Shown here: positions 12,918 through 64,000 of the stretch, in pieces | Layout of the letters: every line of letters begins with the position of its first letter | Numbering within the stretch: position 1 is the first letter of the stretch | NCBI GenBank assembly: GCA_025558095.1 | Contig: JAIVFI010000004.1 | Location: forward strand, 310,001-374,000 | Direction of reading: 5' to 3' | From: Hyaloraphidium curvatum SAG 235-1 | Taxonomy: Eukaryota > Fungi > Monoblepharomycota | Length of the DNA: 64,000 nt | Translations under genes and position numbers: made by a program | The notes under the pieces: generated by a model | Told to the model about the DNA's origin: nothing | Database searches by the model: none | What the model saw: only the letters and a program-made list of their open reading frames with translations

Positions 12918-13474
12918 CGTTGGTCTGGGGTGGTGACGCGTCGATTTGTTGACAACTCAATCATCGGACCGCCGTCCTCGCCAGGAGGGCTCATCGCCGC
13001 GAAAGTCGGCCAACGCCTCTTTCACTGCTTCCCGCTACATCGATCGCAGCCGGTACCTGGGTGTGCTGCCGGCACAAGGGCTCCGATCGCGGTCCGCTTC
13101 CCGTGAACCCCGTCGCGCCCTCCTCCCCATCCCCTCGCGAGCATTCCCCCGAAACACGACCGGAAACCGCATCTGAGAAGCTAAAAGAATCATTGGGTCG
13201 CGGGATGGAGCCGTGATGGCTGCGGTTCGGACGGTTCGAGATCCCCCGACGCACGGGGCCAGCCCGCTACCGCTGCAGCAACGGTGCCGAAGCCGGCACG
13301 GCGCATCCGAACGACTTGCAAGACCCGAGATCGTCATCGTTCAGGTGCTAAATCTGAGTTTTCGATGTTCGCCATGCCCGACCGGCGTTGCGCGCTATTT
13401 CCTTTCCTGGCTCATTCGCTGCGGCTTCGCCTCGTCGCGCGTTCCCACCCCAGGTCCCCCCTCTCCCGGCCACG

Positions 13475-16060
13475 ATGCGGGCGCTGATCCTCGCCGCCTT
13501 CCTCGCGGCCGTCGCTCCGGCGACGGCACAGCTGTCGTCGGGCTCCGGATCGCTCTCGGCGACCCGGACGGCCGCGCAGACGGCGACCATCATCCGCCCC
13601 GCGACGACCACCTCCGCGGCCCCCTCCTTCGAGCCGCTCCCGAGCCCGACGCTGTGGGACAACATCCTGAAGGTCACGTCGGGCGAGATCAGCCCGGGCT
13701 ACCAGTTCAACCAGTTCAAGCGGCTCGTGGACGCCAACCCGGCGATGCGAGACCTGCTCTGGGGCCGCAACTTCCCCTCGCGCACCAACATGACCCTGTT
13801 CGCCTTCACCGACTCGGGGTACACGAACATGGGGAGGGTGTTCGGGGCCGGCTACGTGGCGTACGTCGAGGGCCAGTCCGCGGACCTGATCAAGTGGGTC
13901 CCCCCCCGGGGAACCGGCCCGCTGGGCCCCCAGCGCGGTGCTGATGCCGCGATCGGTCCCGCAGCTACCACCTCCTGCCTAAGCGGATCCAGCCCCTGCC
14001 CGAGGAGTTCCTGTGGGAGCGCACGATGCTGGGCAACACCGGCGGGCTGAGCACGGTACCCATTCCACCGCCGAGGTCCCGCCGCCCGCGCTGACGGACG
14101 CCTTCAGATTGCCGAGGGGCAGGTCATCCAGATCGATGCGACGGTCAAGCCGCCGACCCAGGCCCAGTGGAAGTACGTCCAGAACGGCTTCAACGCCCAG
14201 GGCCGGATCGTCGACACCCTGCCCGCGACGTGGGTCCCGTTCGGGCCGCCCTTTCGATGGATGTGGTGCTGACGGGCGGTATTCGTAGCAACGGGATCAT
14301 CTACGTCGTCGACCAGGTCGTCGTCCCGCCCTTCGCCCCCAGCCAGGTCGCCAAGACCGGCGGGGACGCACTCAAGGGCTTCTACGACGCCCTCGAGCGG
14401 AGCAACGCCGCCGCGGCGGTCGACGGTCTGACCCGCGCCACTGTGTACGTTTTGCTGGCCGCGCATGGCCCTGCCTGCTCTGATCGTCCTCCGCAGCTTC
14501 GCGCCCGTAACGTCGGCGTGGGACGAGATCCCCCAGATCTTCACCGAGCTCACCACCGCCGAGCTCCAGGACGTCATGAACCACCACGTCATCCCCAACC
14601 AGATCCTGTTCGCGTCCAACATCACCAACGGCGTGTTTGTCCAGACCGCCTCGGGGGAGACCCTCGACTTTATCGTCGACGGCGACTCGATCCGGATCAC
14701 CGACGAGGTGAACGACGCGCTGGTCGGGATCAAGGACACCGTGACCAAGAACGGTCTGGTGGGCGTCGCCGTCGCGGGCGGTCCGATTCGCGGCTGACCG
14801 TACCTTCACAGCTCCACCAAATCAACAAGGTCCTGCTGCCGCCCAAGTTCAAAAAGCGGCTACTCCCCACCATCATGGACACCGTCTCGCGGATCAACAC
14901 CGCCGCGATCGGCGTCAAGAACTACAAGCTCGGCACCCTGGAGGCGCTCCTCGACAAGATCCCCTCCTACAAGGCGATGCTCAACGGCACCGCGGGCGGC
15001 AACGGGACCATCACGCTCTTCGCGCCCACCGACCGCGCCTTCTTCAACATCGCCCCCACGGACGGCCTGGTCTCGGAGGACCAGGTGCCCGCCGTCCCCG
15101 AGATCCTGGCGTACCACGTGCTCCCCTCGGAGACCAAGGCCGCGGACTGGACCGGGAACGACGTCTTCCGGACCATGCTGACCGACAAGGGCGCGCTGGG
15201 GCTGACCAGCCTCGACGGGCAGAGGCTCCTCGTGGCCCGCGCCAACGAGTCGGGGGTGTCGCCGAGGCAGGCCGAGACGGACTGGGCGCTGAAGCCCTAC
15301 GAGTGGGTCGTGCTGCACGGGGCCAACCGCGTGGCGAGCATCGTCGACACGATCGAGTGCAAGTGGGTCTTGAAACGTTCTTTTGCGGCGTTCCGGAGTT
15401 GCTGACCGGCCGCTTGTTCCAGGAACGGCTTCATCCACATTGTTGACAATGTTTTGGTTCCCCCTGCCACGGTGACCGAAAGCGCCCGGAGCCTCGGTTA
15501 CACAGCCTTCGTGGACGCACTGGCCGCTCTTGGCCGGAACGCCACCATCGACGGCCTGCAGAGGGTCACTGTGTAAGTGCAGCATGCGCCTCTCGGATTG
15601 CGCTCGCCCTGATCCGCAAACCCACAGCTTTGTCCCGACCAACGAGGCCTTTGCTGCCGTTGCCGACTCGATCGGCGCCCTGACTCCCAACCAGCTGGAG
15701 TCTGCCCTCGCTCACCACATCCACAACGGGCTCGTCTACTCGGACGTGCTCGCCAACGCCTCGTCGGCCACGATCGTGACCGCGGACGGCACCGACCTGA
15801 CCCTCACCAAGCTGGCCAACGGCACTGTGACGGTGGACGGGGCCACGGTGGTGAACGCGGACGTGCTGACCAAGAACGGCGTCATGCACGTCGTGAACCG
15901 GGTGCTCGTGCCCCGGGTGCTGCCCTCCGCGTCGAGCGTTGCCACGGGCACCGCGACATCGGTGCCGACCTCGACCTCGCGGCCGGCTTCGGCAGGGAGC
16001 ATCAAGGCGGGCTGGATGGCTGCTGGTGTCGCCGCTGCTTTGTCGCTGGCTGCGATCTAG
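13475..16060 (+). CDS. Secreted, probably GPI-anchored multi-fasciclin (FAS1) domain protein, about 7 introns
   Basis: Signal peptide MRALILAAFLAAVAPATA; repeated TLFAPTD/FVPTNEAF and NGxIHVVxxVLVP FAS1 motifs; Ser/Thr stalk and hydrophobic C-terminus. Confidence 0.9.
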
Positions 16061-16117
16061 ATCGTGCGATATCTTTGATATTTGCTATTGGAACAAGCTT
16101 GAAACCACAATGAGCGA

Positions 16118-17549
16118 TCACACGAAGCAGCCCTTGAGCAACGGGTCGTTGTCGATCACGTCCCGGATCTCGGGAACGCAATCGCGCGAGCTCAGCACAG
16201 TGTAGAAGTCCTTCTTAACGTTCGGCGCCTCTGCTGCGGCCGCGAGCCAGTCCTCCCGACTGAAAGGCTTCTGCCGGATGCAGTCCCAGAAACCCGTATC
16301 CGTGAAGAGCTTCCCGATCCGCTCCGTGGCTTGGCCCTGCAACCGAGTGATTATGTACGTCGCAACCCCGCACTGCAAGCCGTGCGGTTTGGGCGGCTGG
16401 TTGCGCGACTCGGCGAGATTGTCGAGGGCATGCGACAGCAAGTGCTCGGAACCCGACGCCGGCCTCGAAGAGCCGCAGATTTGCATCGCTATTGGCGAGC
16501 CGACAATCAATCAGTGCTTGCAATATGGACGAAAGTGAACACACCGATCCCGTTGAGCATCAACGAGGTTCCCAGCAGCCGCATCCCTTCCAGATCCCTG
16601 GTCGGGTTTGCGATGAACTGGTACACGGTCGAGTCGGAAAGTAGGGCGGCAAAATCGTTGACAGGGGTGCCGTCTTTGTGCCACGCAAGCTTCCAGTCGA
16701 ACACTGCCGTGGCCTTCGCGGCGAGGTCGCCCACACCGCTCAAGAACAGAGACGCGGGTGCAGCTAGGCACACCTGGGTATCGATAATGACGCCAAAAGG
16801 CATGTGCGAAGGCAGAGAGCGCTTCCGACCGTTCACCGTGAGGGAGGATTGGGGGGAGCAGAACCCGTCGTTCGACAAGGAAGTCTGCCCGCTGCCGCCT
16901 CAGCTCGGGTCGACTTGGGAGCATTCCACCACTCACCGGAACGGCGAAATATGGCTTCTTGAGCATGAAGCTGACGTATTTTGCGATGTCGAGGGCCTTC
17001 CCGCCACCCAATCCAACGATCGCCTGAATGTTGGTCGGCAGATTCTTGAAGAGCTCCACCGCGTTCTCGAACGAATCGTCGTCGATCTCGCACTGTGCAA
17101 CAATCTGTATCGGCTCCGACGACTCGTGCCCCTCGACGATGGCCGAATCGACCTGGGCCGATTTGCCAAAGATGCCCGTTCGCGGAAGGCTCATGCGACG
17201 CGTCGCCTGGGCCGGAGGCTCGGACCCGTTCGGTGCAAACGCTGTTGGGTTCCCGCCCGGACCGGCACTCTTGGTCGGCTTCGCGCAGCCCTCGACGACG
17301 GCCTCGACATGTTGGGGCGGGAGCCCCTTGGAAACGAACAGGGCAATGTGCTGGAAACCGAATCGCCCCACGTACTCCCCGATCCGTCCGAGAACTGTCC
17401 ATGAACACGCAGAGGTAGCCAATTGTCGAATGTGGAGGGCAGCCGTCAGTCATTCCCATGTGGAGGTAGGGTTTCCGGGGTTCACCATTCGGCTTGATGC
17501 GGACCAGTGTCGGCACCTCAATTTGGGCACCGAGCGAAGAGTACGACAT
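16118..17549 (-). CDS. Glycerol-1-phosphate dehydrogenase (EgsA/AraM)-like metal-dependent alcohol dehydrogenase, about 3 introns
   Basis: GLGGGKALDIAKY, PTSLSNDGFCSP, SGVGDLAAK, SSRPASGSEHLLSHALD and HGLQCG metal-binding motifs, spread over ORFs 16511-17422, 16507-16878 and 16118-16510. Confidence 0.85.
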
Positions 17550-17743
17550 GGCCAAGACGAGCACGAATTGCTTTCGACGGTCTGAAGAGAGGCGGCGGCG
17601 GCCGATGTGGCGTGCCTCCCAACCGCCGAGGGCCCTGATCGAAAACTCCGAATCCCCAGCGACCGATCACAGCGCTTTCTTTACTGCTGCCCACTCTTCG
17701 AGCCACAGCAGTGCGTCTTTACATGAGAAGATACAACCGAGCT

Positions 17744-18529
17744 CTACTTCACCATCCTGGTAGAGAAAATGGATGAGAGCCCACCAGCCTGGTGCTTTGC
17801 CAGCCAGCGCTGGTACCGCTTCCACAAGTCGTCGACGTCTGATCCTGTCAGAAAGTAGAAGAAGGATTCCTCAAACTTGTGCGTCGCCATCATCTGGTTG
17901 AGGCGTTGGACAAAGAGAGGATGCGGTTCGTCCAACCAAATGAGAAACCAGGTCGCGGATTCGTCCGTCCAAGGGGTGTTCTTCGGCGCAGGGCGGGGAA
18001 CGCGCCAGCCGATCGGCGCGTAGCCGTTCTTGACACGCGTCCAGTCGGCGACGCCCTCGATCAGGCAGCCAGGAGCAGTGCCCAAGGCGTCCCATTGGAA
18101 GGCGTGGGTCAATTCGTGCGTGAGCACCCCCGGAAGCTCGCGCTTCATGATCATGTGCCCGCCTGGAGAGTTTAACACGTCGCGGAGATAGAGCGACGAA
18201 AGGTGGGTATGGATCACGTGGCCCGTCTTGTCGCGGTCCGTCCACGCGACTCCAGGCTCACGGACCACGTAGAAGTGGACGACTCGGCGCGGAGGGACAA
18301 GCATCCATTCCCGGTCAGGCAGGTAGCCCAGCCGAATCATAACGTCCTTGCAGATCCGTGCGAGCCAGGCTGTCACTTGATCGCCGGGCACGAATGTCTC
18401 GAAAATGCCCCCGGTGTCCTCGGAATCGTCCCGGTTGATGTAGTTGAACTCAATCCCCGGCCACGTGTCCGGCGCGGGCTCGGCGGTCTCGGTAGACACG
18501 CGACGCGCGGGAAAGCACGGGAGCCCCAT
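17744..18529 (-). CDS. BSP (basic secretory protein / plant-bacterial peptidase) family zinc metallopeptidase
   Basis: GVAWT, GVLTHELTHAFQW (HExxH) and LIEGVADWTR. Likely start MGLPCF at 18529, since further upstream the ORF overlaps the divergent gene. Confidence 0.85.
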   Translation of the reverse strand: MGLPCFPARRVSTETAEPAPDTWPGIEFNYINRDDSEDTGGIFETFVPGDQVTAWLARICKDVMIRLGYLPDREWMLVPPRRVVHFYVVREPGVAWTDRDKTGHVIHTHLSSLYLRDVLNSPGGHMIMKRELPGVLTHELTHAFQWDALGTAPGCLIEGVADWTRVKNGYAPIGWRVPRPAPKNTPWTDESATWFLIWLDEPHPLFVQRLNQMMATHKFEESFFYFLTGSDVDDLWKRYQRWLAKHQAGGLSSIFSTRMVK

Positions 18530-18667
18530 TGCACGCTTCAGTGGATGCAACCCTAAATGAAACTGAAATTTCTGAGAAGCGATGCTCAATGTCGTGGGCG
18601 TTTCGCTGAATTCCACGTTCATCCGCTGAGAACGGTCGATAAAAGCGCCCGAAAAGGAAGCATAACG

Positions 18668-19652
18668 ATGGAGGGATCCGTGATTGGACCGGGAGCTGGA
18701 CCGGGAGCGCCGTCTCGGCTCACGCTGACTTTCGGCATCTATTGTCCAATCTGCTTCGTGAAGGTCGGCAACCATTTCTCGATGCCCCGGGCCTTCATTG
18801 ATTCCTTCGTTCCTTTTCAAGGTGCGAAACCCTGTTGCATGCCCCAGGGGCCACGTCTTCTGCAAGTCCTGCTTCGAAACATGGAAGTCCGCGAGCGGAA
18901 ACGCGGTACGCTGCCCCACATGCCGGGCTCCCGCGGACGACGCCTTGACCCTGATAGGAGGCCCGGCCGCTGACCCCGACGAGAATGTCGACTTTGCAAG
19001 CCCCACACTCGCGGCCGAGCTGGCCGAAGCCAGGCGATTGCGACGCGTGCGTATCGAGGCTGTGATGAGGCATTACGACGCCGAGAACACGCGCTGGGAG
19101 GAGGCCAACCGAACTCTCGCCAACGAGCTTGCTGCGGCGCGGCGCCGTATCGCCGAACTGGAGCAGGATCTGACAAGGGCCCCGCCTACGCCGTCGACGG
19201 CATCGTCCGGCACGCTCCATGTGCCTTCTTCTCACTTGACAACCCCGACAAAAGCGGCGCTGCTCAAGATTCGCTTCCGTACCGGGGCGGGCGCCGCTGC
19301 GCCGCGGCAACCGAACTTTGAACAGGACGATGATCCGCTTCCGCCGCAAAAGCGTGCGCGCGTGGATCTGGACGCCGCCAGGGATACGGAGGCTCAATCA
19401 CAAGTTGTGGCGGCGCTCCAAGACGAGATCGAAAGACTTGAGGCAGAAAACGCGGCGCTACGGCAAGCCGCGTCAGCCGTCCCGCCGTCGCCGTCAAAAT
19501 GGCCGGGACACGAGATTTCCAACTCGCGGCTCAGGATCAAGGAGCTGGAAAAGGAGCTAGCGGCAACGAGGAAAGCTCTAGATGTCGCAGACGACTACAC
19601 GGAAAAGTTGTCGGCGCGAATCGCGGAGCTGGAGACGACCGGGAGACGGTGA
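18668..19652 (+). CDS. RING finger plus coiled-coil protein, 1 intron
   Basis: CPICFVK, intron, VRNPVACPRGHVFCKSC...CPTC; three coiled-coil segments follow. Confidence 0.75.
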
Positions 19653-49225: not shown

Positions 49226-52200
49226 TCAGGCTGCAGGAACATTGCCCTGTACTCCAGCTGCAGGTACCACTGCGGGAACCCACCCTGGACCCTCGAGAAG
49301 TGCTTCAGGAACCATGGCGTGGTCGTTGAGCTCGACATGCATGGCAGGCAACGTGCCGCTCTGCTCAAATCCGATTGCATTGCTGCCGCCATCTAACCAA
49401 ACGACCTGCCATGGCGCACCGTGCAATCGATAGAGATTGAAAAGGTCCAGGATTGTGCCAGCTCTGAAAAGCAGCAACTCGATGGGCCCAACGTTGCTAG
49501 GCGAGTTGTGCCGAGCGAAGAGCTGAGCGCACGCCTTCTCCGCGCGGGTCAGGAGCTCAGGCTTGTCCGTCAGCCACAGGATCCTCGCTGTGTTGTCGTC
49601 TCCGGGGGTTACACTGTCTGCACCAAAGACTTGTGCCATCGTTGCCACTGAGTCTGGCTGCTGGTTCGGCTGCTGTCGCCGGCGGGGCCCCAGTTCGATC
49701 TTCACGCCCGGGTTCACGAGAACGCATCCCAGAGCATGGTCTTTGATACTGCAAGCTCCACGTCTGTTATCACGATCCTTAAATTGGCTTAGGCACCTGA
49801 CGCAAAGCTTGGGTTGCTGCAAGGCAAAGCAAAGCACAGTGGTTAGTTTCTCATCGACGGGGAGATCAAAGTCACTACCTGGCGGTTCCTTTCCTCGAAT
49901 CGCTCTCTGTCTTCCCGCTCCTTATCGGACTCAGGCCAGAACGTCTTCCTCGTAAGGCTGTGCAGCAGGAATGGGTGACGAACAACAACACAATAGACAT
50001 GCTTGAATCGGCCAGGCTGTCTCATCGCAGCGTCCAACGCATCAGACATGCCCCCAATTACAGCATCAAGCGCTCCTGGTCTGCGAAGATCGTGCGACAC
50101 GTTGGGCGCATCTCCAGCCCCTGTCACGGGGCCAACGGCAGCGTTTGTTATGGGCCGCGTGTCCCCGAAACGTTCGTGAAGCTGGACAGCGGCGTCCAGG
50201 TCTATGAGCGTCACGGATGACTTGGTGTTAAGGCGCTCCGCAAAGGTGGCGTTGATGGCACCTGAAACCGCTCCATCGTCCCCATCTCCAATGCTTAGCC
50301 TGTCCAACAAGGAAAAGTGGCCGACTCCGGCGTCGATGCAAGCTTGGAGGAGGGTCTGCGCAGTAAAGCGGGCCGCCACGCCTGATGCTGGATCCACCGG
50401 GATGCGGAGGTCCACAGTGTAGCGGGGCGGAGGGTCAGTCGCTAGACCCTTGTTCCTGAGGGCCTGGAGAACCTTGTTCAGCAGCACGCTGCCAAAAGCA
50501 ACGATTGACACCTTCATCTTGTCACTCTCGGTCCTCTGGACGTCACTTAAAACAAGCGAGTGGATCCAGTCGTTCCAGTATGCCACTTCACCTGGGTCCA
50601 GATCTGGTCGGCCTTGGAGGGTTGTAACAGCCTTGTTCCTAGCCTCCTCGGGATTTTTCTCGAGGAGCTCGACCGGCTCTCCGAGGCGGCTTAGCTGGCT
50701 TAGAAGTTGTTGCAAGTCTCCGTTCAACCTGCCCCCATCAGCGGCACGAAGGTCCCCTTCAACCCGTTTCCAAAGTGCCGGGTTGCGAACCAGTTTCCTA
50801 GCTTGAGCAACGTCATCCAGGGACCAGTGCTGCTTGAACTCTAACGCCTCGGCATGGGCAAGGGCCGCACGGATATCGCCAACGCAGCCCAACGTCTCGA
50901 CACGCGCCAAGATACAGCGACTGTTTCCGGCCTCGCGGAGCCCCGTGCAGTCGAGCAAGATCCTTCCCGTGAGCCGTGCGAAATCGGTGCTGAGAAAGTG
51001 GTTCTTGATGTGATCCACCAGCTGCTGACCTGCGCTCACCAGGTCTCCGCGTGCAGGGTACATGCGCGGCACAACCTCTCCGGCGAAGAGAATTTTCTCG
51101 GTCTGTGCGAAGGTGGCGAGCACGGCGCGGGCCACGTCCCGGATGGCATCGGAGACGTCCTTTGGCACGGCCGACACCAGCAGTTCCCTCGTGTTTGGGT
51201 GTGCAAGGTCGAGGGATCGGCACACCGAACGTGCCGTCGCTTCATCACCCGTGACGATCTGAGGCAGCGTAAGCCGGAGTCGTGTCATTGCACGGCGCAT
51301 CTGATCGTGAGAGAAACCCAGGGTCCAGGCCACCATAGTGCTGAAAAGGGTCCGGAGAACGTCGCCGTCCAAAACGAGCCTGCGTCCAGAAATCAAGCTA
51401 GGGAGTCGGCCCAGAAACTGGAAATCGATCCACGCGCGGCGCCCGTTGTTGTCTGGTTTGCCCATGTACACCTGCGTGGCGGTCCTGCGCTTGAAGGCTG
51501 GGTCCATCCTTTCCAGGTGGTTGGTGCCGCCGATGAGGATAAAGTTGGGCACGTCCTGCACCCCGCCTACGTGCGAGAGGATGACGCCGCGGAGGTCGCT
51601 CTTGGCGCCCTCCGCTGTGGCCCCTGACGGGGCGATGCCGTCGATCTCATCGATGGCGGCCGCGCAGATCCGCCACGGAACGAGCCCAGCCCGCGTGGCC
51701 AGCGCCCGGACCATGCCCGCGTTCTCGCCCACGTAGCCGCGGGCAAAGTCGGCCGCGCTCAGCGGGTCGCTGACGAGGTGGATGCCCAGGGAGGCGCACA
51801 TGCCACGCATGGCGTGCGTCTTGCCCGTACCGGGCGGGCCATACAGCAGGGCGCCACGAGGCATCTCCGCATCGGCCCCGGTGTAGTCCAGGACCTCGCG
51901 AAGGAGCACGTCCAAGACGTTGTCCACTCCGATCATGGCCACGATGCTCTTGCTGCCTGGTTTCGCGGATTCGCCAGGCTTCGTCAGCGCCCCAATAACG
52001 ACGTCGCCTCGGAGGGGAGGCAGCCTCTTGATCTCCATACCGAGCACCTCTTGCGACACGGGAACGGGCCGGGGGTGGGTTTCGCACCACAGCGCAACCT
52101 CGGTGAACCCGAGCTCCGAGTCGCGCACGGCCTCGCCTTCGCGGCGGACCTCGGCCTCGTGGGCGTCGAAGTAGTTGAACATCCGGAGGAAGTTGTGCAT

Positions 52201-53079
52201 CTGCGCGCGAGCCCAGAGGCGGCCGTCGCTGGCGTACTGGTCCCGGGCCCGCTCCCACTGCTTGAGCGCGCGAGCGTTCGCGTTCCAAAACTCGTTGCCG
52301 CCTCTCGCGCGCACGACTCTGAGGCCCACGCGATCGAGGTCGAAAGCACTCTCCGAAGGGGGCCCCCTACGCGTGGTGAAGGGGAGCAGCGGGCCTGACA
52401 CCTCCACGGTGACGTGGGGCGGCACGATATCGCAGCGGAAAGCATCTTTGATCAGCAACGCGGCCACGTTGGTTGCCTTCCTCCTCGCCTGCACTTGCGG
52501 CGGCAGATGGCGCTGGTCCTGCCCGCCCTGCGGCGGCTGGTTGCGCTGCCCTCCCGAACGGTCGTCGACCGGCTCACGCACGGCGATGGGGCAGAAAGGC
52601 GGCGGATTCAGCGCGCCGTCCGGGAGCTGCGTTGCATCGGCGGCGTTCAACGTGGCGAAGTAGCGCAGCGCGCCGCGCAGGCCAAGGCCCATGGCCTCGC
52701 GCGTGCCGGGCTCCGCGGCGATGATGGCGTGCAGGTCCAGCGGCACGCCGTTGTGCGTCTCCCCGTCGTCGTGCACGGTCACCGTGACGAGCGAGCGGCC
52801 GCCCTCCGCGCCGGTCGTCTTCCACAGTTCGATGGCGCGCTTGGCGGTGTCCCTCCACCACGCAAACCCGCGCGCCCTCAAGCCGCCCGCGAGCCACGCG
52901 ATGTCGAGGCTGTCGGCCGTATCGTGTGCGATGGCGGGGTCGGCGCCCTCCACCGCGACGAGCTCGATGGCGGCCGCGGCCTTGTCTAGGGCCTCGCGCA
53001 GCGCAGCGGGGTCGCCGTCGGCGAGGATGTCCAGGCGTAGCAGCGCGTTGCGCATCTCGTTTGTGAACGGCGCGGCCAT
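49226..53079 (-). CDS. Large AAA+ ATPase with degenerate second AAA-like region and C-terminal CxxC..C..H zinc ribbon; intron about 49820-49879; possible extra exon ending 49077
   Basis: Likely start MAAPFTNE at 53079. Walker A GPPGTGKT, Walker B AAIDEIDG, SRH GGTNHLERMDPAFKRR; next exon CVRCLSQFKDRDNRRGACSIKDH. Confidence 0.85.
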
Positions 53080-53232
53080 TGCTGCAGCGGGCGGACGAGA
53101 GGGTGGATGAGATGAGGCGCCTGCTGACAGGCCCTGGACAGGACCCGTACTGCGACGAGGAGGACCCTGATGACTTCTGCCCCGACTTGAGACTCGATTG
53201 AGATCAGCACCCCCGACGCCGTCGGCGCTCAG

Positions 53233-55671
53233 ATGGAGGGCCACGACCGCATCGCCAAAGCGCTGGGGCTCGACGCCGCCGGCGCCGTCGGCGACCTGAT
53301 GAAGGCCTTCCCCCCGCCCGCGCAGCCCGCCCCCGCGTCGGGCCCAACGCCCGGCGCGCAACCCGCTGGCCTCGCGGATCTCGTGCGCCGTGGTGTCGCG
53401 GTGCTCGAGCAGGGGCTCTCCATCGCAGCCGGCGTCATCGACGACCCCGAAGCCGCCGCTTCCGAGGTTGACCGCCGCGCCGCAGCCGGGGCCGTGCGCC
53501 GCGGCGCCGAAGCGCTGGAACGCATTCCGGAGCTGGCGCATATACGCCAGTTGGGGATGCTCCGCGGATGGGTGGAATCCATCGTAGCGGGCAACGGGCT
53601 GCCGCAAGCCGCGCAAATGCAAGGCCTGCTCGACCAGGTTGCCGGCGTAGCCGGCGGTCTGATCAACGCGATCATCCCCGTCGTCCCGCAAGGCCTGATG
53701 AACATCAGGCGGGACGCCTTGGACAAGGCCCACCGGGTCGCCGAGCTCGCCCGGCGCGCCCGTGAAGACCCTGCGGCCCTTACCAACATCACGGCCATGG
53801 GCGGCATCGTCGGCGCCCCCGAGGTCCTGCATGATCTCGGAAGCCGGATCACCGAGAATCCGGCGCTGGCCGAGCCTGCCGCGGGCGTCGTGCGCAGCTT
53901 TGAGGACCTGGTCACGTTCGAGAACGATCTGAGGCAGAGCGAGATTCAGTTCCAGGCCGAAGCGCGGGCTGCGGCAGATAGCCTGGAGAACGCGCGCCAG
54001 GCCGCCAGAGAAAACGCCTCGAAGCTTGGAGAACGCAAGAAAGAACTTGCGGCCAAGGACGCGGCGCTTGGCAAGGCCGAAGCGGCGGCCCTTGCGGCCG
54101 CAGCCAAGCAGCGCGCCGCTGCGGCAAACGTCCAGAGCAAGGCGCAGAACCTGGATGCGGCAGTGACGGCGCTGAAGAAAGCCGCGGCGGATCTGGAAAA
54201 CGCCAAGCAAGCCGTTTATGTGCAGGCGGAAATGCAGAAGCAGGCCAGCGCAGCCGCCCAGAAGGCCGGTCAGACGGCAGCTCAGGCACAGCAGCACCTG
54301 AAACAGGCGGACGCGGAGCTCGTGAATGCGCGAAATGCCGAGAAGGCTGCCACTGCAGCCTACGCTGCAGCGCAGCTGGCCACGAATGCGGCCCGCACGG
54401 ACATGAAAAATGCCAATCAGGCACTCGTCATCGCGGAGCAGACGCTTGAAGACGAGCAGATTAAGCTGGTGGGAAAGCGCAAGGAGAGGTCGGAGGCGGA
54501 GCGGGCCCTTCGGGAGGCGAAGCAGAAGGAGGCCGCTGCCCAGCGCCGCCAAAAGCAGCTCCAAAGTGCCCTGGATGCCCTCCGCCGGGCCCGCGCGGAA
54601 ACAGAGCGCAAGATCGAGGAAGCGCGCCGCAAGAAGTGCGACCTCTTCAAAGCCCTGGCCGGCCTCGCGTGCGTCCTCTTCCCCGCCGTGGCCCCGGCCA
54701 TCATGGCCGTGGCGGCGGTTGTGGGCAACGTCGCCGGCGCAATCCATGACGCCATCCATTCGGGCTCTCTCGACCAGATCGACGGACAGATCCGCAACGT
54801 GGAGAGCGCAATGACCACTTGCAACAGCGAGCTGACCGAGTCGACGAGCGCAGTGGCTCATGCCCAGACGAAGCTGACGAACGCGAGCAACCATATCACG
54901 ACGGCGGAGGATGCTGTCCAAAAGGCAGAGAATGATGCCCGGGCTAAGCGCAGCGAGGCCGCCAGCATGCGTGAGCGCTTCAGGGAGAAGGCGGCCGTCG
55001 AGCGGGAGAAGCAGAAGGAGGCTGCTTCCACTGCAGGAAAACTCAAGATCGCCCAGCATGGCAAGGCTCTAGCGGAGCACGCGGTGGCAGTGGCGGCCAA
55101 GGACGCTGCCAAGGCCGCGGAGAAGCAGAAGGAGGCCGGTGATATGCTGTCGCAGGCCAATCGGGATGCCCAGGCGGCAAATGCAAGCATGGCGCGGCTC
55201 CAGACTGAAAGGACGAACGCTGAGGATGCCGCCAACGCCGCGGAGGGAGAATGCAAGACTGCACACACTGAGCTCGACAAGGCCGACGACGAGAGGGTGC
55301 GCACCTACAACGAGTTCTCTTCTGCCGACGGAGAATCGCAGGATGCGCACGAAGAAGTCGCTAAAGCTCAGGATGGCGTTGATGCTGCCCGTGCCGACAT
55401 CGAGTACCACGAGATCGACGGCAACCGCGCTCAGGCATGCGCCCAAGCTGATGCCCGCCTGGCGGCCGATGCGCGCAACATGAACCAGCTCGGCATAGCC
55501 ACCCTGGGCAAGGGACTGGCCTCGGGCTTCGGCGTCCCGGCTGCAGTGGGGTACTTGGCCGATGGCCTTGTCAGCCAGCGTGAGGACGTTAGCGCTGAAG
55601 TCAGGCGCGTGCGCGAGCCACAGACTGAGCCTGAGCCGGAATTTGAACACGACAGGCCCTGGGCCGTGTAG
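53233..55671 (+). CDS. 812-aa Ala-rich coiled-coil protein with central hydrophobic segment; function unknown
   Basis: Intronless ORF with host-like codons. Two long heptad arms flank LFKALAGLACVLFPAVAPAIMAVAAVVGNVAGAI. Confidence 0.8.
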   Translation: MEGHDRIAKALGLDAAGAVGDLMKAFPPPAQPAPASGPTPGAQPAGLADLVRRGVAVLEQGLSIAAGVIDDPEAAASEVDRRAAAGAVRRGAEALERIPELAHIRQLGMLRGWVESIVAGNGLPQAAQMQGLLDQVAGVAGGLINAIIPVVPQGLMNIRRDALDKAHRVAELARRAREDPAALTNITAMGGIVGAPEVLHDLGSRITENPALAEPAAGVVRSFEDLVTFENDLRQSEIQFQAEARAAADSLENARQAARENASKLGERKKELAAKDAALGKAEAAALAAAAKQRAAAANVQSKAQNLDAAVTALKKAAADLENAKQAVYVQAEMQKQASAAAQKAGQTAAQAQQHLKQADAELVNARNAEKAATAAYAAAQLATNAARTDMKNANQALVIAEQTLEDEQIKLVGKRKERSEAERALREAKQKEAAAQRRQKQLQSALDALRRARAETERKIEEARRKKCDLFKALAGLACVLFPAVAPAIMAVAAVVGNVAGAIHDAIHSGSLDQIDGQIRNVESAMTTCNSELTESTSAVAHAQTKLTNASNHITTAEDAVQKAENDARAKRSEAASMRERFREKAAVEREKQKEAASTAGKLKIAQHGKALAEHAVAVAAKDAAKAAEKQKEAGDMLSQANRDAQAANASMARLQTERTNAEDAANAAEGECKTAHTELDKADDERVRTYNEFSSADGESQDAHEEVAKAQDGVDAARADIEYHEIDGNRAQACAQADARLAADARNMNQLGIATLGKGLASGFGVPAAVGYLADGLVSQREDVSAEVRRVREPQTEPEPEFEHDRPWAV

Positions 55672-55872
55672 GGCCCCTTACTTCGACCCCGCCTTGGATC
55701 ACGCAGGAGGTAGGTTTCCCCGTCAGATGTCCAGTTTTGTCGCGCGAGCTCTGACTATGATTCCGTAGTTGGAGATGCAATCCCAAGGAAGATCACAATC
55801 ACGTTGTATCGTGTGTGTTGGTCTATTTGAAAACAGTGACATTGGAAATCAAAGTTGCTTTGCATTGGTACG

Positions 55873-56861
55873 CTACTTTGGGTCCCAGACTCCGGATTTT
55901 TTGAGAGTGTTGAAGAACCAATAGACCCGTTTGCTCTTGCTCTTGTAGACGCGGATGCGATCAGGTGCATCATTGGGCGGGTTGGCTCTGAGTTCCATGA
56001 TGGTGTCATCTCGGTCACTGATGGCAAGGCAATCATCGGCAACGCCCAATGTGAAGGTACCCAGATTGAGCTTTTCCATAGACAACTGCGCACGGAGCTC
56101 CTCAACCGTGTTCTTGAGCCCGGACATCTCCACCAGCTGGGCCTTGAGGTCATCCACTTCTCTCATAAGGGAAGCAATGGCCTTGGAGCTCAGGCGCAAG
56201 TGTTCCTGCGTGCTGGACAAAAGGTGTCGTGCAAGGGCATCTCTGGTGCCCTGCTAAATGCTCAGCTCGGTCCTCCAAATGTCTACGGAAGACAACGTAC
56301 CTCGAAAGCAGGGCAGAGTTCGCACTTTACAAGGTAGTCTGGGCATGTTTCATCATGTTGGTCTTTCCATATCCTCTCCACAGGCCGGAAAAGCTCCATG
56401 CCGCGCTCCTTCACGTGCGCTTGGCAGTTCTCGCAGCGGAAGGCTTGACACTTCGAGAGATGTGCCTCTACTTCCGACATGGCACCTTCCCAGCCGCAGC
56501 TTTTCCATCTTGGGCACTGCACCTTGAAGCTGAGATACTGGCGTTTCCCAAAAGCGGTCCACTCTTCGAAATTGATCGCGCCCACCACGTTTCCCTTGCA
56601 CGATGGGCAGAGCACACGGGTGTCCGGTGGCGCAGGCGCAGGATCGTCCTTCAGGTTCTGCAACGCGTCCGACGCATTGCTCCGACCGTTCTTCCGCCCG
56701 CTCTTGAGCGCTTCCCAGCAGTAAGGCTCCCCGCAGAGATGGTGCTCGCACGCTTTCTCGTCGGTCTGGAGCAGAACAGGATTGCGCCAAGGGTAGCACT
56801 CGTTCAAGCAAATGGGGCACGGGAACGCCGGCGGCGGTGGTTCGCGGCCAACGGTCGCCAT
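55873..56861 (-). CDS. Second RING finger plus TRAF-type zinc finger plus coiled-coil protein, 1 intron
   Basis: CPICLNEC..CEHHLC..C..CPSC; CPRWKSCGWEG..VEAHLSKC; HDETCPDYLVKCELC; exon 2 coiled coil LMREVDDLKAQLVEM. Confidence 0.8.
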
Positions 56862-56997
56862 TGTCTGGAAGAAGGCCTGCGACCGCACGGGGAGCACACG
56901 CGATGGCCTCTGCGGGTACCGGGCTGCAATCGGGGCGCGTTGCTTTTGGCCGCAGAGCCTGTGGTCCGGGGCGTGATATGGATCTGTTTACTAGACC

Positions 56998-57086
56998 AAA
57001 ACCCTCCAACCCGGTTCAACCCTCCTTCAACCCTCTTCAACCCTCTTTCAACCCTCCCCAACCCTCCCCCACCGGGCAAAACCCCC
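56998..57086 (+). repeat. Imperfect tandem array of 10-11 nt AACCCTCY(Y)YC units
   Basis: aaaaccctcc aacccggttc aaccctccttc aaccctcttc aaccctctttc aaccctcccc aaccctcccc; about 7 units. Confidence 0.8.
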
Positions 57087-57381
57087 TGAGAGGCCACCTG
57101 CGCGCCGGTCCCGTCCCAGACACGCGTCGGCGTAGCCTTCTCTGCCCTCGAATCAACGCTACCGTCGCGAGGAGCCTCGCCTTCCCGCGTGTCGCGACGG
57201 TTTATAGCTTCCTGTCCCCGGGAGGAGACGAGGCCTCTGTTGAAGAACCCCTGGGGACATTCTGCACGAGAATGACTCCAAGCAGGGCAGTCTGAGCTCT
57301 AGGAAGGACTGTGGCGCCGAGGACGAGGCCAACTGATCCGAACCGTCGCGTCTCGACGCGACTTCTCGGGCCAGCGGAGGC

Positions 57382-60300
57382 ATGGGTCGGAACCGGAACA
57401 CGGGCGGCGCGAAGAAGGTCTCTGGCGGCGTGAAGAAGGCTAAGGTCCCCGCGACGAAGGCTTCGGACGCACCAAAGCAGACGAAGAAGCGCGGGCGCCC
57501 GCCAAAGACCGCAGCGCCGCCGGCCGGGCAGCCGGAAAGCGGAGGGGAGCCCGCCGGACAGCAGCCACAAGCTTCGGCGGGTGAGGCACCTGCAGAAGGC
57601 CGTCCTCAGCACGGAACGGTCTTCCAGCTCGAGTTCTCGGCCGCCCAAAAGAGGAGGTTGCCGGGGAAGAAGGTTACCCCGTTCACCCATGGTCTCCAGC
57701 CTTTTCCCTTCGACCTACGACGTCATCCGGAGCGCTTCGTCCTCCGGGATGGAGGGGATCCGATTTTCAAGGTCCTCAACGGGCCGGGAACCCCGGAAAT
57801 GGATTCTCTCGTGACGCTTCGGCCGACCTTCATCCTTTCCCCCTGGGAGGGCTACCCGGACTTGGCGCGGCTCATTTGTCCGACGTGCGGCTTGAAGCTG
57901 AAGCCCAGTGCTTGGGTTCAAGATCTCTTCCTCATGCGTGGGCCCCATGGAGAGTTGGAACTTCTTTGCCCCCGGCGATACGTTTGCGAGAACTTTGGGG
58001 AAGCCAAGGCGGGGAAGTGCACCTTCCAAATTGGTGCCCACAACCTGCTCGATAAAATTTCCGCGGACCTGCGCTACGTCGGTAGGAACCGCTCCCCGAT
58101 CGATCTTGTCGACCTCGCTCATCATTCGTCGGCAGTGTTCCCTTACGAACGGGTCGGCCACTCGTACGTGCACATGTCGTTCCTCTCGAAGGTCTATAAC
58201 CTGGTGAACGAGTGCGGGGCGGGCATGACGGCTAAGATCCTGAACGGTACGGCTCTTTCTGAACTGGTTCTTGCCCTTTCGTGACATGTCGGTTCCAGCC
58301 GACCTGGAAGCCGAACATCACGTCGTTGCGCTGCACCTTCAACACCACGGGATGCCGGGCCCCATGCCGGATGCGGAGACGACCAGCGCATTCTTCTCTT
58401 CAGGTAACCTTTTGTGTGGCATCGTGAGGACACGCTGTGACTCCGTTCCCATAGACTCTTCGGGATCCAAGCAAACGAGCATAGATTCCTTTGTCGTGAG
58501 ATCAGACTCGGCTGAAAACGACTCGGCACCTTCTCAGGCGGGGCCCTCCGACGGCACGACCGTACCGACGTTCGCCGGCCTCTTCCGGCAGAGCAGGAAG
58601 AAGCCGCAGTCGATCCAGGAGTCAATGGAGGACGAATTCTCGTGAGTTGGGCCGCGATTCGGGCTGAGCCTTCGCCTGTGTGTTGACTTGGCGTCAGAAT
58701 GGCCGGGGATGTGATCGACGCTGCTTTTGTGACTCGTCTACACGACGCAGTTTGGAACCGATACGGCGACCATCTTTTCCACTCATATCAGTACCAGGCT
58801 GACTGTGGGTTCTGGCGGAACGGATTTGGTTTCGCTAATTGGCTCATCTCCGCCGCGCAGGCCGGAACATTGCGCAGGACGGACTGGAAAAGACCGCACT
58901 GCACCAAGCTTACGTGCACGACGAGGAGAATGGGGGCCACAAGGCCCTCAACTCCAGCAAGCATGCTGACGGCGGTGCTGCCGCGGATGCCGAGAAGGAT
59001 GCGGCTGCAAAGGTGAACGGCGGCCGCGTGGCGGCCGAGTCCATGAGCAGCAAACCTCAGCTGATCAAGTACATCACCGTGACTGGTACTCCTCTTGGCG
59101 CGGTGAGCCGCTCCGCGCTGCCCATGCAGCGGAGCTTCTGACGACGTTCGCAGTACATGGCCCGGAACAAGGGTGACGACGCAGCCAAGCACGGCCTAGA
59201 GGTTCTTCGTAACTCTTTGCGGGCTCAGAAAGCTGCGGGCCGTGGAATCGACGGAAAGAAGCTTGATTCGGGGAAATCTGTCGGCGCCTTTGAGGAGCCG
59301 GGGACTCCGGTCATCGTGCTCCAAGTGGACCGGTGCTGTGGCTCGCCGGGCTCTTTAGCCCCACTCGTGAAGGCTGTGTTTGGCGATCTCGTGGTCGTAC
59401 GTCTCGACCATTTCCACTGGGTGCAACGGATTTGCGAGGACGTCGGGGTCACGGATTTTGTCAAGGACAAGATCATCGGCATCGTTTGGAGTTCCATTCA
59501 GTTCCCGGGAGTTGAGCTCCCCAGCGGGGAGAAGACGCCGCAGCCGATGCTGCCACGCGAGGAAGCCATCAAGGCCTTCGACGCCGCTAAGAACGAAGCT
59601 CTTCGGTACCACGGCGGTCTTCCTCCAAAGAAGGTCGAGGTGTTTGAGAAGAACTGGGCAAACGCTCGAGTGCACCTGGAAAAGGGGTGTTTGGACGATC
59701 CAGAGATTTTGTTCTACATCGCGGCAGACGGCTCAGTGATGGTTGCTAGGGGAAGCAATCGTCTCGAGGGCTATTTTCGGCTTCTGCAGGACTGGCTCGG
59801 CCGCCACGCGAAACTCGAGGACACCATCCTGCAGGAGATTGACCATTTCGATCTCGATTACATGCTGACCGTGTTGCGCATCAAATTCGGCGACTTTTGC
59901 GCCCAGCAGTTGGGCAGGAATCCGGCTCTTTGCCAGGTGCTGGAAGCTCGGAACCGCTTGGCTCGCCAGAATGGTCACCCTGCACAATGCAACCCGCTTC
60001 TGGAGGATCACGAGTGTTTTGAGATTCGTGCCGTCACCTCGGCGGAAGCACGGCAAGCCGGGAAGGCGATCCGGGACCAGCAGGCCCACGTCGCCGAAAG
60101 GGAAAAGGATCCGGCTGTCCCGAAGGCGCGGCCCGCCTCGCCTCGCGGATTCACTCCGAAAAGTCGTCCTTCGCACAAGCCGTCGCCGTCTCCGAAAGCT
60201 CGTGGTAGAGCCGCGCCGAACTACGGCATCAAGGCCGAGTTTCAGCGCACTGTGGCCCAGGTAAATGATTGCGATGGAGTGGATTCATGGTCTACTCAAC

Positions 60301-61398
60301 ATGTCTGCGTTCATTAGCTCGGGTCCGCCGTTGTAGCCACCTCAGGCTTGTTCTCGCCGGTCATTTCGTCTCCAACCGGGCCTTCGAGCCAAATGTCGCC
60401 GAAGGCTGCCTCTACTGCCGCTGCAAGCCAGCCTCTTTCGTTTCCTATGGAGGAAGACACGCTGGAGGTTCCCGTCGTTCCTTCTCTCTCTTCCGCGCCC
60501 GTGCAGGCTCTAAACCGGCCTGTGGAGCCTGTATTGGAGTGGGTGGACGCCATTTTCGGATCTCGGCTTCTGGGCTCATCCCTCGTCTTTTGCAGGACGC
60601 CGGCGCCCTTGCCCGTCGCCTTTCAGCCGTCAAGCGGTGCAATGGCCTTGAGCGGCAAGCGGAAACGTGAGGATTCGGTTCAGGGACGGGCAGATTCGCC
60701 GGCGGCACCGCGGCCGGCCTCGACGTCGGTTCCGGCGGCTAAGAAGCGGGCCATGCCGCCGGCGCCTGGGACAACATCGTCTCTGGCTCTACCCGATGCT
60801 TCCACATTGGCAGCTGGGCCCGCTTTGCTCGAGCACGTGCCGAGGCCCCTGCACTTGCCGCCCGAGATCTCGAAAGAGGCTTGGGCCGAGGCCCTCCTCG
60901 CTGCCTTCGCTCATGTGGCCCAGAAGCTCGTCCAAGGTGCTTCGACTGTGTCGGTGAGCGGCATACCGGCTTCTCTCTGCCGTCGCGCTGGTGGTTTAAC
61001 GTCAGTTGGACCGACAGGTCGCTCCTTCGTTGACCCTGCCGGAAGTTGCTGTTTCGGCCATGGAACCCGCGAAGCCCAAGGTGCGAGGGCATGCCCCAAA
61101 GGATGAAGCTCAGCTATGTCGGCGCTGCGGGCAGCTCAAGGAGGAGACATCCCGGGCTGCTCATGTCCATCGGCTGGGCCTTTGCGATGATGGATTTCGC
61201 CGTAGCGACGACACGCAGCGCAAGATTACCATCCCCGCTTACGGCACGCGCCGCGCGGAAGATGGAGGTCCCGACTGGGCCTACCTGGAGGGAGAGTTTC
61301 TCGACCTCCTTGATGCCAAGGATGCCACGCTGCGTGGCCCCCGTCTGACGGCCTACGAGGCGTTGAAGGTGGTTCTTGTGACGGAATTCCCGAAGTAG
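57382..61398 (+). mobile_element. Multi-exon DDE transposase-like gene (DxxH type, MULE/IS256-related; DUF6729-like N-terminus) with AT-hook and C-terminal zinc finger
   Basis: AT-hook KKRGRPPK; CPTC..RRYVC..C domain; candidate catalytic motifs IAQDGLEK, VLQVDRCC, VRLDHFHWVQRI, GCLDDP and RGSNRLEGY; C-terminal CRRCGQLK..H..C. Confidence 0.65.
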
Positions 61399-62338
61399 TA
61401 GATCGGTTTCATGTATATCATTGTGGAATTCAAGCAGGGCAACTCATCTGAAGTCCCCATTGACCGTCCTGGTGAACACGGACCCGGAAGGCGATCGTAT
61501 GTGCTCGGATGCGGCCATAGAAGTGATTGAATCGGCTCCAGCGGCCATGGTAGAGGTAATGCGATGCACAGAAAGGCATGTGCTTGATGACAGGATTGAG
61601 GAGCTCGACACACCGGCGCAAAGTGGCACTACATCGGGGGAGGGCGTCGGACCTGCTAGTCTTGACCTGCTGGACCACCTACACCAAGCGAAAATCGATG
61701 GCCGGTAGCCGTTCTAGCTTCTGCGCACTTATTTACATCGAGTCAGCGTATTGCGCGGAGCAGACCGGGTTTGGTGCGTGGTTGCGCGCCATCGGCGTCA
61801 ATTTCCACTGACGAGGGGGGGGGTCTGGGTCCCCGAGGTGCTGCGGACCTAAATTGAGATGCAGGCCGAATTCGACGCTTTCATACTACTACTTGAGGAA
61901 TCGGCACGCCTCGCAGTGCTGCATTGCGTTTTGTGAGCGGGATGGCTCCGGAACGGCTCAAAATCGGCCAAAATGGGTCCGCGCCGACCGCCCGCGTTCA
62001 CGCACAGGCGATTCAATCGACGCGGCTTTTCGACAAATCGCGTATTTATATGCATTTCTAACGCCTCATAGCTGTGGACAACTTCACGTCCTCATGCGGG
62101 GGCTCCGCGAGGTCCCAAACTTGAGCATGCCGTGCATGGAGCTCTGGGAGCGCTCGCTGACCAGTAGAGGATGGAAGAAAGCCATCATCCATCGGAATGA
62201 CTTTATTGAACCATGTATGGTACATTGGGAGGGAAGTACAACATCTCTTCTATCCTAGTTGGTCTCGGGGAGGAGAACCGAGCACTAGCGTAGCGTGTAG
62301 TGAAGTTCCAAGATCGCGGTTCGGCGGCGGGTCTCAGA

Positions 62339-62399
62339 GAGTCTATCCAAGGGAGCCCTTGGATAGACTCCCCTTGGATAGACTCCCTTGGATAGACTC
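62339..62399. repeat. One inverted plus three direct copies of CCCTTGGATAGACTC
   Basis: GAGTCTATCCAAGGG (62339-62353), AG, then CCCTTGGATAGACTC (62356-62370, 62371-62385) and CCTTGGATAGACTC (62386-62399). Confidence 0.92.
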
Positions 62400-62967
62400 C
62401 CCCGAACTCCGCTCGGTTTCCGATAGCGATGGCTGGAGACCCGACCGGTGCCACGAGAGAGCACCAAGCCGGACGTCCAGCGGCCTTGTCGTCTGCTTCC
62501 TACTGCCTCTGGACGGCGGCGCATCGGAACATTCCTTCCCCCTCGGTTCGTGCTCCGCCGTTTCGTGGCACGAATCCTGACCAACGGCCGTGTTCTCCCC
62601 CATTCTCGCTCCTATCTGGACCGGAAAAAGATCCTCGGTGCCTCCGTTGGGGCAGCCAACGGCTGTACAGTGCTTGGGGGCCTCGCGATGTAGGTGCCGC
62701 GAAGCTCCTTTTCGACACCCTTGTCTGACGTCTTTGAACCCCTTCCTCCTCACTTTCCGGCCCGTCTATGGTCGCTCGCGCTCATGTTCAAGCCGGTTGC
62801 GGGCTCAGTTCGTGTGTGTGACGCTCTGGTACCCCTGTCTCTCGGCGGAACGTCTGTCGCGCTTCAGGGACCGAAACCGACCCGCCACCGCCTCCTCATC
62901 CCGATCGAGCTTGCATTTGGCCCTCTCCTGCTTCATTGCGGGCCGCTGATTGTCCTTCTGGGCGGAG

Positions 62968-64000
62968 ATGGAGCCCCAGCATGCTTCCAGCGCGCTGGAC
63001 GTGTCCCACCTCGTTTCGCTCGTTGGAAAGTTCGGAACCTATGCCTCGGCGGCCCAGCTCGGATCTGGGCGAGGCCTGCGCTGGATTGCCTACGTCAGAA
63101 AGTCGCTGGACGACGGGAGCGACAATCTGTCGCTCGTGGATCAGATCGGGATCATCCGGGACTGGGCAACCGCGCGCGGGGACATTGTCGTCGCGGTGCA
63201 CGAAGAACTGGCCAGCGGGGCACTGCCCAAGGGGCCTGGGGCGTTCGAACGGAAGGAATTGCATGCTGCATTCGTCTCCTTGCTCGCCTCGAACGACTAC
63301 GCCGGCCTGGTCGTCGTCCGGCTGGACCGGTTGTCTCGCGACATGGTTGCGACCCACAGCTACATTCAGGAGCTCACCCAGGCCCGAAAATCCTTCGTTT
63401 GCGTCAACCAGCCCGAGCTGACCTTCTTCTGGAGCGGCTCGGCGCCGTCGGCTACTTCGTGGCTGTCACTCGCAATGAACTCGCTCATGGCACAGTTTGA
63501 GCGCGAACAGGCGAGCTTTCCCCGTCTTTTGAAGGCGTAGCACCTCTAATCATTGTTCATTTTAGGTTCGCGAACGGACCAAGACATCCGTTGCTCAGCG
63601 AGTGCGCCGCGGCATCGGTGTCTCGCTCCACTCCCCGTTCGGGACGCAGTTCGAGGCGACCATGCCTGACGGCACGCGACGCCTTTCGTTCAGCTCCAGT
63701 GACCTCGTCGGACGCGCCCGTTCGAACGGGAAAGCTTCACCGTTGAATATCGTGGACCATCCGGCTGAGAGAGAGCAGTTCCTCTTGCTTGCCGCCTTCC
63801 ACCTGTCAGCTCTTCGGAAAGGCCAGAAACGGGAGCCGCGGGAGTACGCGGATCTGCTTTCCAAGCACTCCGTGAACGTCAATCATCGGAACCCAGGAAA
63901 GCTGAGAACCAACGGGAACTTGGTCAAGGCGACGATCAAGTCGATCAAGTTCTTCTCCTCCAGGGACGGCGGTAGCTTCGAAGCGGCGGTTGCGGAGCAA
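62968..64000 (+). CDS. Serine recombinase (resolvase/invertase catalytic domain plus C-terminal extension); predicted GC-AG intron 63511-63565; 3'-truncated by window
   Basis: IAYVRKS (catalytic Ser), SLVDQ, EELASG..ERKEL, LVVVRLDRLSR. Splicing restores helix E AQFEREQ|VRERTK; exon 2 is open to 64000. Confidence 0.9.

Follow-up and report, generated by a model that had tools for sequence, protein, structure and literature searches.

The window analysed here is the 64,000-nucleotide stretch C4:310001-374000 in the genome of the monoblepharid fungus Hyaloraphidium curvatum (31.9 Mb, 55 contigs), and positions are given in window numbering unless a contig is named. The right-hand end of the window is occupied by a transposon with two genes; the first encodes a putative DDE transposase and the second, which is preceded by a perfect palindrome, encodes a serine recombinase. 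The features are as follows:

56963-56969, plus strand: left 7-bp target-site duplication (TSD) GGTCCGG; the matching copy follows the right end at C4:375129-375135, 1.1 kb past the window
56970-64000 and on to C4:375128 (window-equivalent 65128), plus strand: transposon body, 8159 bp here and ~8410 bp in the other copies
57003-57067, plus strand: subterminal CAACCC-rich repeats with a 21-bp period, near the left end
57382-61398, plus strand: putative transposase gene, ten exons, 1172 codons; introns from RNA contigs, frame open
62226-62227, no strand: position of a 278-bp deletion private to the C4 copy, in the spacer between the two genes, from the comparison of copies
62339-62370, no strand: perfect 15+2+15 palindrome, core CAAGGG-AG-CCCTTG, central dinucleotide at 62354-62355
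62356-62399, plus strand: right arm of the palindrome present three times, a 29-bp gain private to the C4 copy, in register directly after the central dinucleotide
62546-62630 and 62690-62792, plus strand: two 5'-UTR introns of the recombinase transcript, from RNA contigs
62968-63510, plus strand: recombinase coding exon 1, 543 nt, phase 0, 181 aa (leader of ~40 aa, PF00239 catalytic domain, first half of helix E)
63511-63565, plus strand: 55-nt GC-AG intron with a CTAAT branch; splice signals kept in all four copies
63566-64000, plus strand (stop at 64019-64021 in window numbering): recombinase coding exon 2, 151 aa (the remainder of helix E, then the SPFG linker, a beta insertion and a predicted helical DNA-binding fold like that of the recombinase domain, RD)

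The preliminary description of this DNA had proposed that paralogues be sought and their flanks aligned. This comparison revealed four full copies of the element (C4, C9, C34 and C46), which were 8.2-8.4 kb long and 97.1-99.5% identical, and the ends of the element were defined by their alignment. The termini were GGCG...CGCC, with only 4 bp of terminal complementarity and no long terminal inverted repeat (TIR). The C9 copy was flanked by its own exact 7-bp duplication, CGTGGGC, and no matching TSDs were found at the C34 and C46 copies. These results show that the element is young and multicopy; a single-copy domesticated gene was ruled out by the multiple copies and the TSDs. The C46 copy had the left flank of C9 but the right flank of C34, and its SNP type switched at 58357-58471, which marks it as an assembly or homologous-recombination chimera. 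Fragments on C37 (C37:528953) and C39 (C39:485039) may represent a fifth copy. In the genome DNA examined, no empty site for the C4 insertion was found. Hybrid attL/attR sites were not seen at the element ends, which carry the 7-bp TSDs, the recombinase-type site being internal; we take the TSDs to implicate the DDE enzyme rather than the recombinase in moving the element. The subterminal CAACCC-rich repeats are candidate transposase-binding sites.

Several features of the surroundings were also recorded. The stretches C34:545035-558393, C46:153861-184331 and C9:546392-555094 overlap by 9-13 kb of flank to both sides of the element, representing either redundant or chimeric assembly or recombinants. 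Window positions 49843-56897 contain an AAA+ ATPase gene, a long coiled-coil ORF and a RING/TRAF-like gene, and parts of this region are duplicated 20-30 kb downstream (C4:379966-390387); the insertion point lies ~70 bp upstream of the RING/TRAF ORF. Beside the insertion, in the right flank of the C4 copy (L010:3260-3600), a minus-strand ORF resembled by eye a phage tail-collar/microcystin-dependent-type domain.

The 55-nt intron at 63511-63565 had been predicted from the sequence, and its 63510/63566 junction had been proposed as a check in RNA. We found a spliced RNA contig that skips exactly those nucleotides (joint 63508>63564, movable by at most 3 nt, with 255 nt on the short side), and a protein in NCBI nr is spliced identically. 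The same RNA-type run contained ten GT..AG joints in the same ~6-kb stretch. The splicing evidence is this single run in contig form, so expression levels cannot be ranked from it. The spliced 332-aa product was present in nr in identical form (P0003, from three contigs), together with a 2-residue variant on C9; a paralogue on C9 carries the annotation Hyaloraphidium curvatum KAI9026854.1. The spliced models were searched one exon at a time and whole-protein scans used the record P0003; word-indexed protein searches returned one or two matches each. The frame of exon 2 was open after splicing, as predicted, but the extension proved to be only ~150 aa long, with a stop 7 codons beyond the window. 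The spliced RNA and the four chromosomal copies with fungal flanks bear out the earlier view of a nuclear, intron-bearing serine recombinase in a mobile element. Bacterial contamination was ruled out by the spliceosomal introns, the fungal flanks, the four chromosomal loci and intron-bearing homologues in other fungal assemblies.

The recombinase consists of a leader of ~40 aa, the catalytic domain, helix E and then ~125 residues. Exon 1 matched PF00239 (E 6e-13; E 2.5e-17 for the whole protein P0003; Pfam), and the YVRKS, SG..R and LDRLSR motifs were all found (S46 at 63103-63105), in agreement with the complete resolvase-family catalytic domain reported initially. Y42, R44, S46, D120, R121 and R124 were invariant in 22 aligned sequences. 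Among the genomic copies, the exon 1 protein was identical in all four, and the changes between copies were five synonymous and two nonsynonymous. Judging from these residues, the recombinase is apparently catalytically intact. Pfam scans of exon 1 and P0003 revealed no N-terminal helix-turn-helix (HTH), so the protein is not IS607-type, as had been stated, and an IS607/Fanzor2 identity was ruled out by this missing HTH together with the presence of a TSD.

The C-terminal part was compared with that of the large serine recombinases (LSRs). P0003 had no Pfam match to PF07508 (Recombinase) or PF13408 (zinc ribbon), and the zinc ribbon and coiled coil that are a criterion for LSRs of 400-700 aa were absent, as the protein stops after residue 332 and its relatives have 294-372 aa. 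The AlphaFold model of exon 2 (pLDDT 76) was searched against 48,161 chains, and the top three matches were serine integrases (9dxd, Z-score 5.5; 9teh, 4.8; 4kis, 4.6), followed by Bxb1 and a second phiC31 chain; the Z-scores of these five LSR chains (3.7-5.5) are below the reliable range of the tool. In these chains the aligned part was helix E and the first 100-130 residues of the recombinase domain. Foldseek found no match to the exon 2 model. With middling but concordant scores, modelled exon 2 therefore resembles helix E plus the start of an LSR recombinase domain. Of the LSR-like extension that had been proposed, the likeness to the start of the recombinase domain stands, but the PF07508 match, the zinc ribbon and the coiled coil are missing. 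The identity as a full LSR was ruled out by the early stop, and that as an invertase by the presence of one site only.

The product of the first gene carries an N-terminal CxxC cluster, a C-terminal CxxC..H..C knuckle and the motif series D...D-x-C-C...DxxH...GSNxxE, in which the candidates for the DDE core are a D near 58801, a D near 59328, the DxxH near 59406 and an E near 59766. Its Atlas neighbours were MULE, DUF6729, IS256 and ISL3 clusters, with values of 0.91-0.95 to unnamed and MULE clusters and a recognition score below the threshold, which makes them a lead only. An HMM of the DxxH block built from six other loci (leave-one-out) ranked the window exon first of the 905 window frames (E 3e-5). 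The single-sequence fold of the transposase exon had a pLDDT of 37, and Tn3 and KDZ Pfam domains had no match in the exons scanned. On the basis of these motifs, the first gene appears to encode a DDE transposase of the DxxH type (MULE/ISL3/DUF6729-like). Zisupton/KDZ elements possess a KDZ domain with a CxC domain and make an 8-bp TSD; this assignment was ruled out by the missing KDZ match and the 7-bp TSD.

A profile search of 1.84 billion proteins was used to identify relatives of the recombinase, with the family defined as sequences above 70 bits, as prokaryote-type resolvases scored at most 62 bits. In a quick tree with a midpoint root, sixteen members grouped on one branch (SH-aLRT 85), and nearly all of them have YxRKS. 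The named members are from Chytridium lagenaria, Quaeritorhiza haematococci and Amoeboaphelidium occidentale, and the others from two fungal assemblies and metagenomes. The sequences thus appear to form a separate clade, seen here only in fungi (H. curvatum, chytrids and an aphelid) and metagenome contigs. Motif scans of IMG/VR, GTDB and JGI metagenomes, whose reach was limited by the search pattern, found no family member; a looser motif scan retrieved only prokaryote-type resolvases, which were used as a negative control.

At 9 of 14 loci, the recombinase gene is adjoined by a DxxH-type transposase or its conserved C-terminal knuckle (H. curvatum, three in C. lagenaria, A. occidentale, two more fungal assemblies and two metagenome contigs). 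Five of these pairs are co-directional (the window, L037, L048, L046 and L047) and four are convergent (L036, L038, L039 and L041); L043 and L044 had no clear partner gene. The partner transposases in relatives showed weak Pfam matches to DUF6729 (E 1e-6) and ISL3 (E 1e-4). At C. lagenaria L037, a unit of transposase plus recombinase was present as a 9747-bp direct tandem duplication (3252-12998 / 12999-19283), and at the junction a CGCC right end, like that of the window element, was joined ~560 bp inside the probable left end (2694). Two C. lagenaria protein models, P0013 and P0055, have the transposase C-terminus or the whole transposase fused to the recombinase and are probably mis-joined gene models. 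Separate elements were also observed at these loci. A Tc1/mariner-like element with 37-bp perfect TIRs and an Ulp1-like protease ORF lies beside a C. lagenaria recombinase gene (L036:3369-8732), and another DDE-like element with 87-bp TIRs lies directly downstream of the recombinase gene at L046:11450-15997. In Quaeritorhiza, L043:1-942 carries, as judged by eye, an ORF with a Crinkler-like N-terminal domain and a P-loop, divergent from the recombinase gene and with the palindrome between them.

The 15+2+15 palindrome was present in all four copies of the element, and a search allowing up to 3 mismatches found no other occurrence in the genome. Its core, CAAGGG-NN-CCCTTG, was exact in three C. 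lagenaria and two metagenome loci; Quaeritorhiza and L046 had variants, and A. occidentale was one base off. A GGG-NN-CCC palindrome with at least 5 perfect pairs, 180-740 bp upstream of the catalytic codon, was found at 8 of 14 loci, where chance would give 0.016 per locus, figures that are descriptive rather than held-out because the criterion was derived from those 14 loci. Across the 31.9 Mb, the exact 12-base core was encountered only 3 times beyond the elements themselves, and 200 kb of prokaryote-type resolvase loci, taken as a control, did not contain it. The central dinucleotide varied (AG, AT, GT, GA, TT or AA), and the outer arms covaried, with two-sided changes in 8 of 11 pairs, a result reached in 0 of 500 shuffles and with far lower values in slid controls. 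The GGG-NN-CCC core was absent from L049, which was retrieved later. Res sites of the Tn3 family lie upstream of the resolvase gene (PMC7157771). By analogy, the palindrome is a predicted crossover site that resembles res, as its two half-sites around 2 bp have the geometry of serine recombinases.

A second recombinase family of H. curvatum, family B, is 37% identical and has its intron at nearly the same place. Family B and L044 have the common core CAACC-[CG]-NN-[GT]-GGTTG. The gene upstream of the family-B recombinase is a GCR1_C ORF rather than a DDE gene, which counts against a resolvase function of the module. With a Crypton criterion of a tyrosine recombinase (NDC10_II) plus GCR1_C, the family-B loci had the GCR1_C match and no NDC10_II match in the DNA scanned there; by sequence, the GCR1_C ORF may be Crypton-derived. 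At C9:336634-341290 (L027/L028), a family-B recombinase half-element forms a 4.66-kb head-to-head fold-back with 95.7% arm identity, no transposase inside and a 35-nt centre beside the family-B palindrome; the native sequence is kept from ~5 bp right of the site centre. Both this fold-back and the arm triplication in the C4 copy are scars centred at the sites, which is suggestive, and palindrome fragility alone could explain both.

We consider it likely that the recombinase serves as the resolvase in a eukaryotic DNA transposon with two enzymes, in which the site and the gene would collapse two direct-repeat copies into one (probability roughly 0.6). Anatomy, splicing and conservation were observed; for binding, cleavage, resolution and the mode of transposition we infer the following. 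The DDE transposase would insert the element. A dimer of the recombinase would bind the palindrome through helix E and the RD-like domain and cut at the central 2 bp; having neither the zinc ribbon nor the coiled coil that give integrases their attP/attB directionality, it would join two identical sites. Two directly repeated copies would then be reduced to one, whether they arose as cointegrates from replicative strand transfer, as tandem duplications or as circle dimers. On linear chromosomes, a cointegrate would take the form of a reciprocal translocation whose two junctions each carry a copy, a situation that would select strongly for a resolvase. A tandem-copy or circle-dimer substrate would explain the presence of the module beside a Crypton-like gene as well as the 9.7-kb tandem duplication at L037. 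With the site placed immediately before the recombinase transcript, Tn3-style autoregulation is likely. The fuller proposal is tentative: a replicative element whose cointegrate is resolved at a single 30-bp site, in effect Tn3 logic with a MULE-like transposase and a miniature recombinase-domain enzyme, may exist across chytrids, monoblepharids and aphelids.

Other findings count against the resolvase reading. Each copy has one palindrome, and sub-sites II/III are absent. The GGG-NN-CCC core was lacking at 5 of 14 loci (three of them with a CAACC-type palindrome) and was a one-off variant at another. No product of recombination at the site was seen among the copies examined; the C46 chimera switches 3.9 kb away, and its origin by recombination at the palindrome was ruled out by this distance. 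The HMM of the E block did not recover the window transposase exon, and pairwise similarity among the partner transposases was weak, so their grouping rests on motifs and the profile test. To our knowledge, replicative transposition is not established for MULE-like enzymes. Finally, a conserved palindrome whose centre is free is also compatible with a simple operator for a dimer.

The preliminary description had favoured a large serine integrase that mobilises the element. This found no support, given the missing zinc ribbon and coiled coil, the 7-bp TSDs, the DDE gene and the single symmetric internal palindrome. In a broader form, the recombinase could be the integrase or excisase that mobilises the whole element, or a cassette made up of its own site and gene that hops into other transposons. 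The RD-like C-terminal fold, the association of the cassette with two unrelated types of enzyme, in either orientation, and the loci L043 and L044 are in favour of this explanation. Nevertheless, we regard it as unlikely, because two copies have 7-bp TSDs and the DDE gene is intact, the integrase modules are missing, and a single perfect palindrome lies inside the element, where an integrase would call for two hybrid sites flanking it. IS607 elements, moreover, have an N-terminal DNA-binding domain and no TSD (PMC6188088).

Alternatively, the protein may be mainly a transcriptional regulator, with the palindrome as its operator and catalysis incidental. The recombinase gene invariably has the site immediately upstream, an operator bound by a dimer would likewise be a free-centre palindrome, and the RNA contigs start shortly downstream of the site, although contigs cannot fix a start. 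We judged this improbable, since the full catalytic set is invariant across sequences that are only 23-39% identical and the spacer of exactly 2 bp matches the cleavage geometry of serine recombinases. Similarly improbable is an enzyme that does not resolve intermediates but swaps arms between dispersed or different elements, through module shuffling or circular copies re-entering resident ones. Recombination between transposons at res has been described for relatives of Tn3 (PMC7157771), and the module common to DDE and Crypton-like elements, the tandem duplication at L037 and the C34 and C46 copies without matching TSDs would all fit such exchange; however, unrestricted exchange between dispersed copies would give translocations, the C46 breakpoint is not at the site, and the mismatched flanks may be assembly artefacts or homologous recombination. 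It is very unlikely that the enzyme acts by breaking DNA site-specifically, with repair of the double-strand breaks aiding maintenance or spread of the element (as for TnpB/Fanzor), or that it processes hairpin or linear intermediates: the fold-back element and the arm duplications do centre on sites, but palindromes are fragile without any enzyme and the site lies within the element, not at an empty target.

Upon comparison with known systems, the resolvase reading places the element closest in layout to the Tn3 family (Tn3, Tn501; PMC7157771), in which a large DDE transposase is likewise combined with a serine recombinase and an internal site ahead of the recombinase gene, the genes occur in either orientation, and the elements are TSD-flanked. 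In contrast, the fungal element is eukaryotic and intron-bearing, and its transposase is of the DxxH type (MULE/ISL3/DUF6729-like), not Tn3 TnpA. Its termini share 4 bp, whereas Tn3 has inverted repeats (IRs) of 38-40 bp, and its TSD is 7 bp; it has one palindrome without sub-sites II/III, and the C-terminal domain of its recombinase is RD-like, not a short HTH_7. With the LSRs (phiC31, Bxb1, SPbeta, A118/LI; PMC3783163), the fungal protein has in common the catalytic domain, helix E, the P(F/Y)G linker and, judging from the modelled fold, apparently the beginning of the recombinase domain. It differs in its length of 332 aa, in having no zinc ribbon, coiled coil, PF07508 or PF13408, and in the single symmetric site in place of attP/attB; LSRs owe their attP/attB directionality to the zinc ribbon and coiled coil (PMC3783163).

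The nearest matches outside the family (<62 bits) were prokaryotic proteins of 220-280 aa with a resolvase domain and a short recombinase domain in the same order (P0018-P0029), whose alignment extends through the region that matches the integrases; five members of alignment A3 match PF07508. The prokaryotic proteins have YxRVS where the fungal ones have YxRKS, they are without the insertions that precede helix E and follow the PFG linker, and the fungal sequences form a separate clade (SH-aLRT 85). IS607-type TnpA proteins (Fanzor2 elements, PMC3627910; a Lachancea kluyveri family, PMC2715888) are also serine recombinases in eukaryotic or eukaryote-virus genomes, and they were the published eukaryotic serine recombinases that we found. 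However, their DNA-binding domain is N-terminal, they show neither TIR nor TSD and they are often accompanied by TnpB/Fanzor2, whereas the fungal element has a predicted C-terminal DNA-binding part, a TSD, a DDE partner and no Fanzor. The MULE/Mutator, IS256 and ISL3 transposons of the (C/D)xxH DDE type resemble the first gene in the motif set, the Atlas neighbours and the weak DUF6729 and ISL3 Pfam matches in relatives; the fungal element differs from them in having no long TIRs, a 7-bp TSD and, as its second gene, a site-specific recombinase with its own site. By layout the element is Tn3-like, but it falls outside the Tn3 family (transposase type, IRs, sub-sites), the LSRs and IS607.

We found no description of a DDE-plus-resolvase element of eukaryotes in the open-access literature, and the conservation of the palindrome and the pairing across distant fungi is new here. 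If cointegrates are resolved as proposed, the element would represent a new class of eukaryotic transposon, with Shapiro-type replicative transposition and a dedicated resolvase, and the old question of how Mutator-like elements gain copies would become testable. It would also provide a compact serine recombinase that evolved on chromatin and has a predicted target. In any case, a 332-aa nuclear site-specific recombinase and a 30-bp candidate target are available for direct assay.

Additional observations concern the Crypton-like neighbours of family B. The GCR1_C ORF is located at L006:1-1000 and L007:1-1100, and further Cryptons with NDC10_II and GCR1_C are present on C2, C21, C22 and C49, some of them in tandem. 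We also observed an imperfect palindrome with 20-bp arms ~2 kb downstream of the family-B recombinase (L006:3383-3423 on C22, and also on C9, C2, C14 and C21), which could be a tyrosine-recombinase site or an element end.
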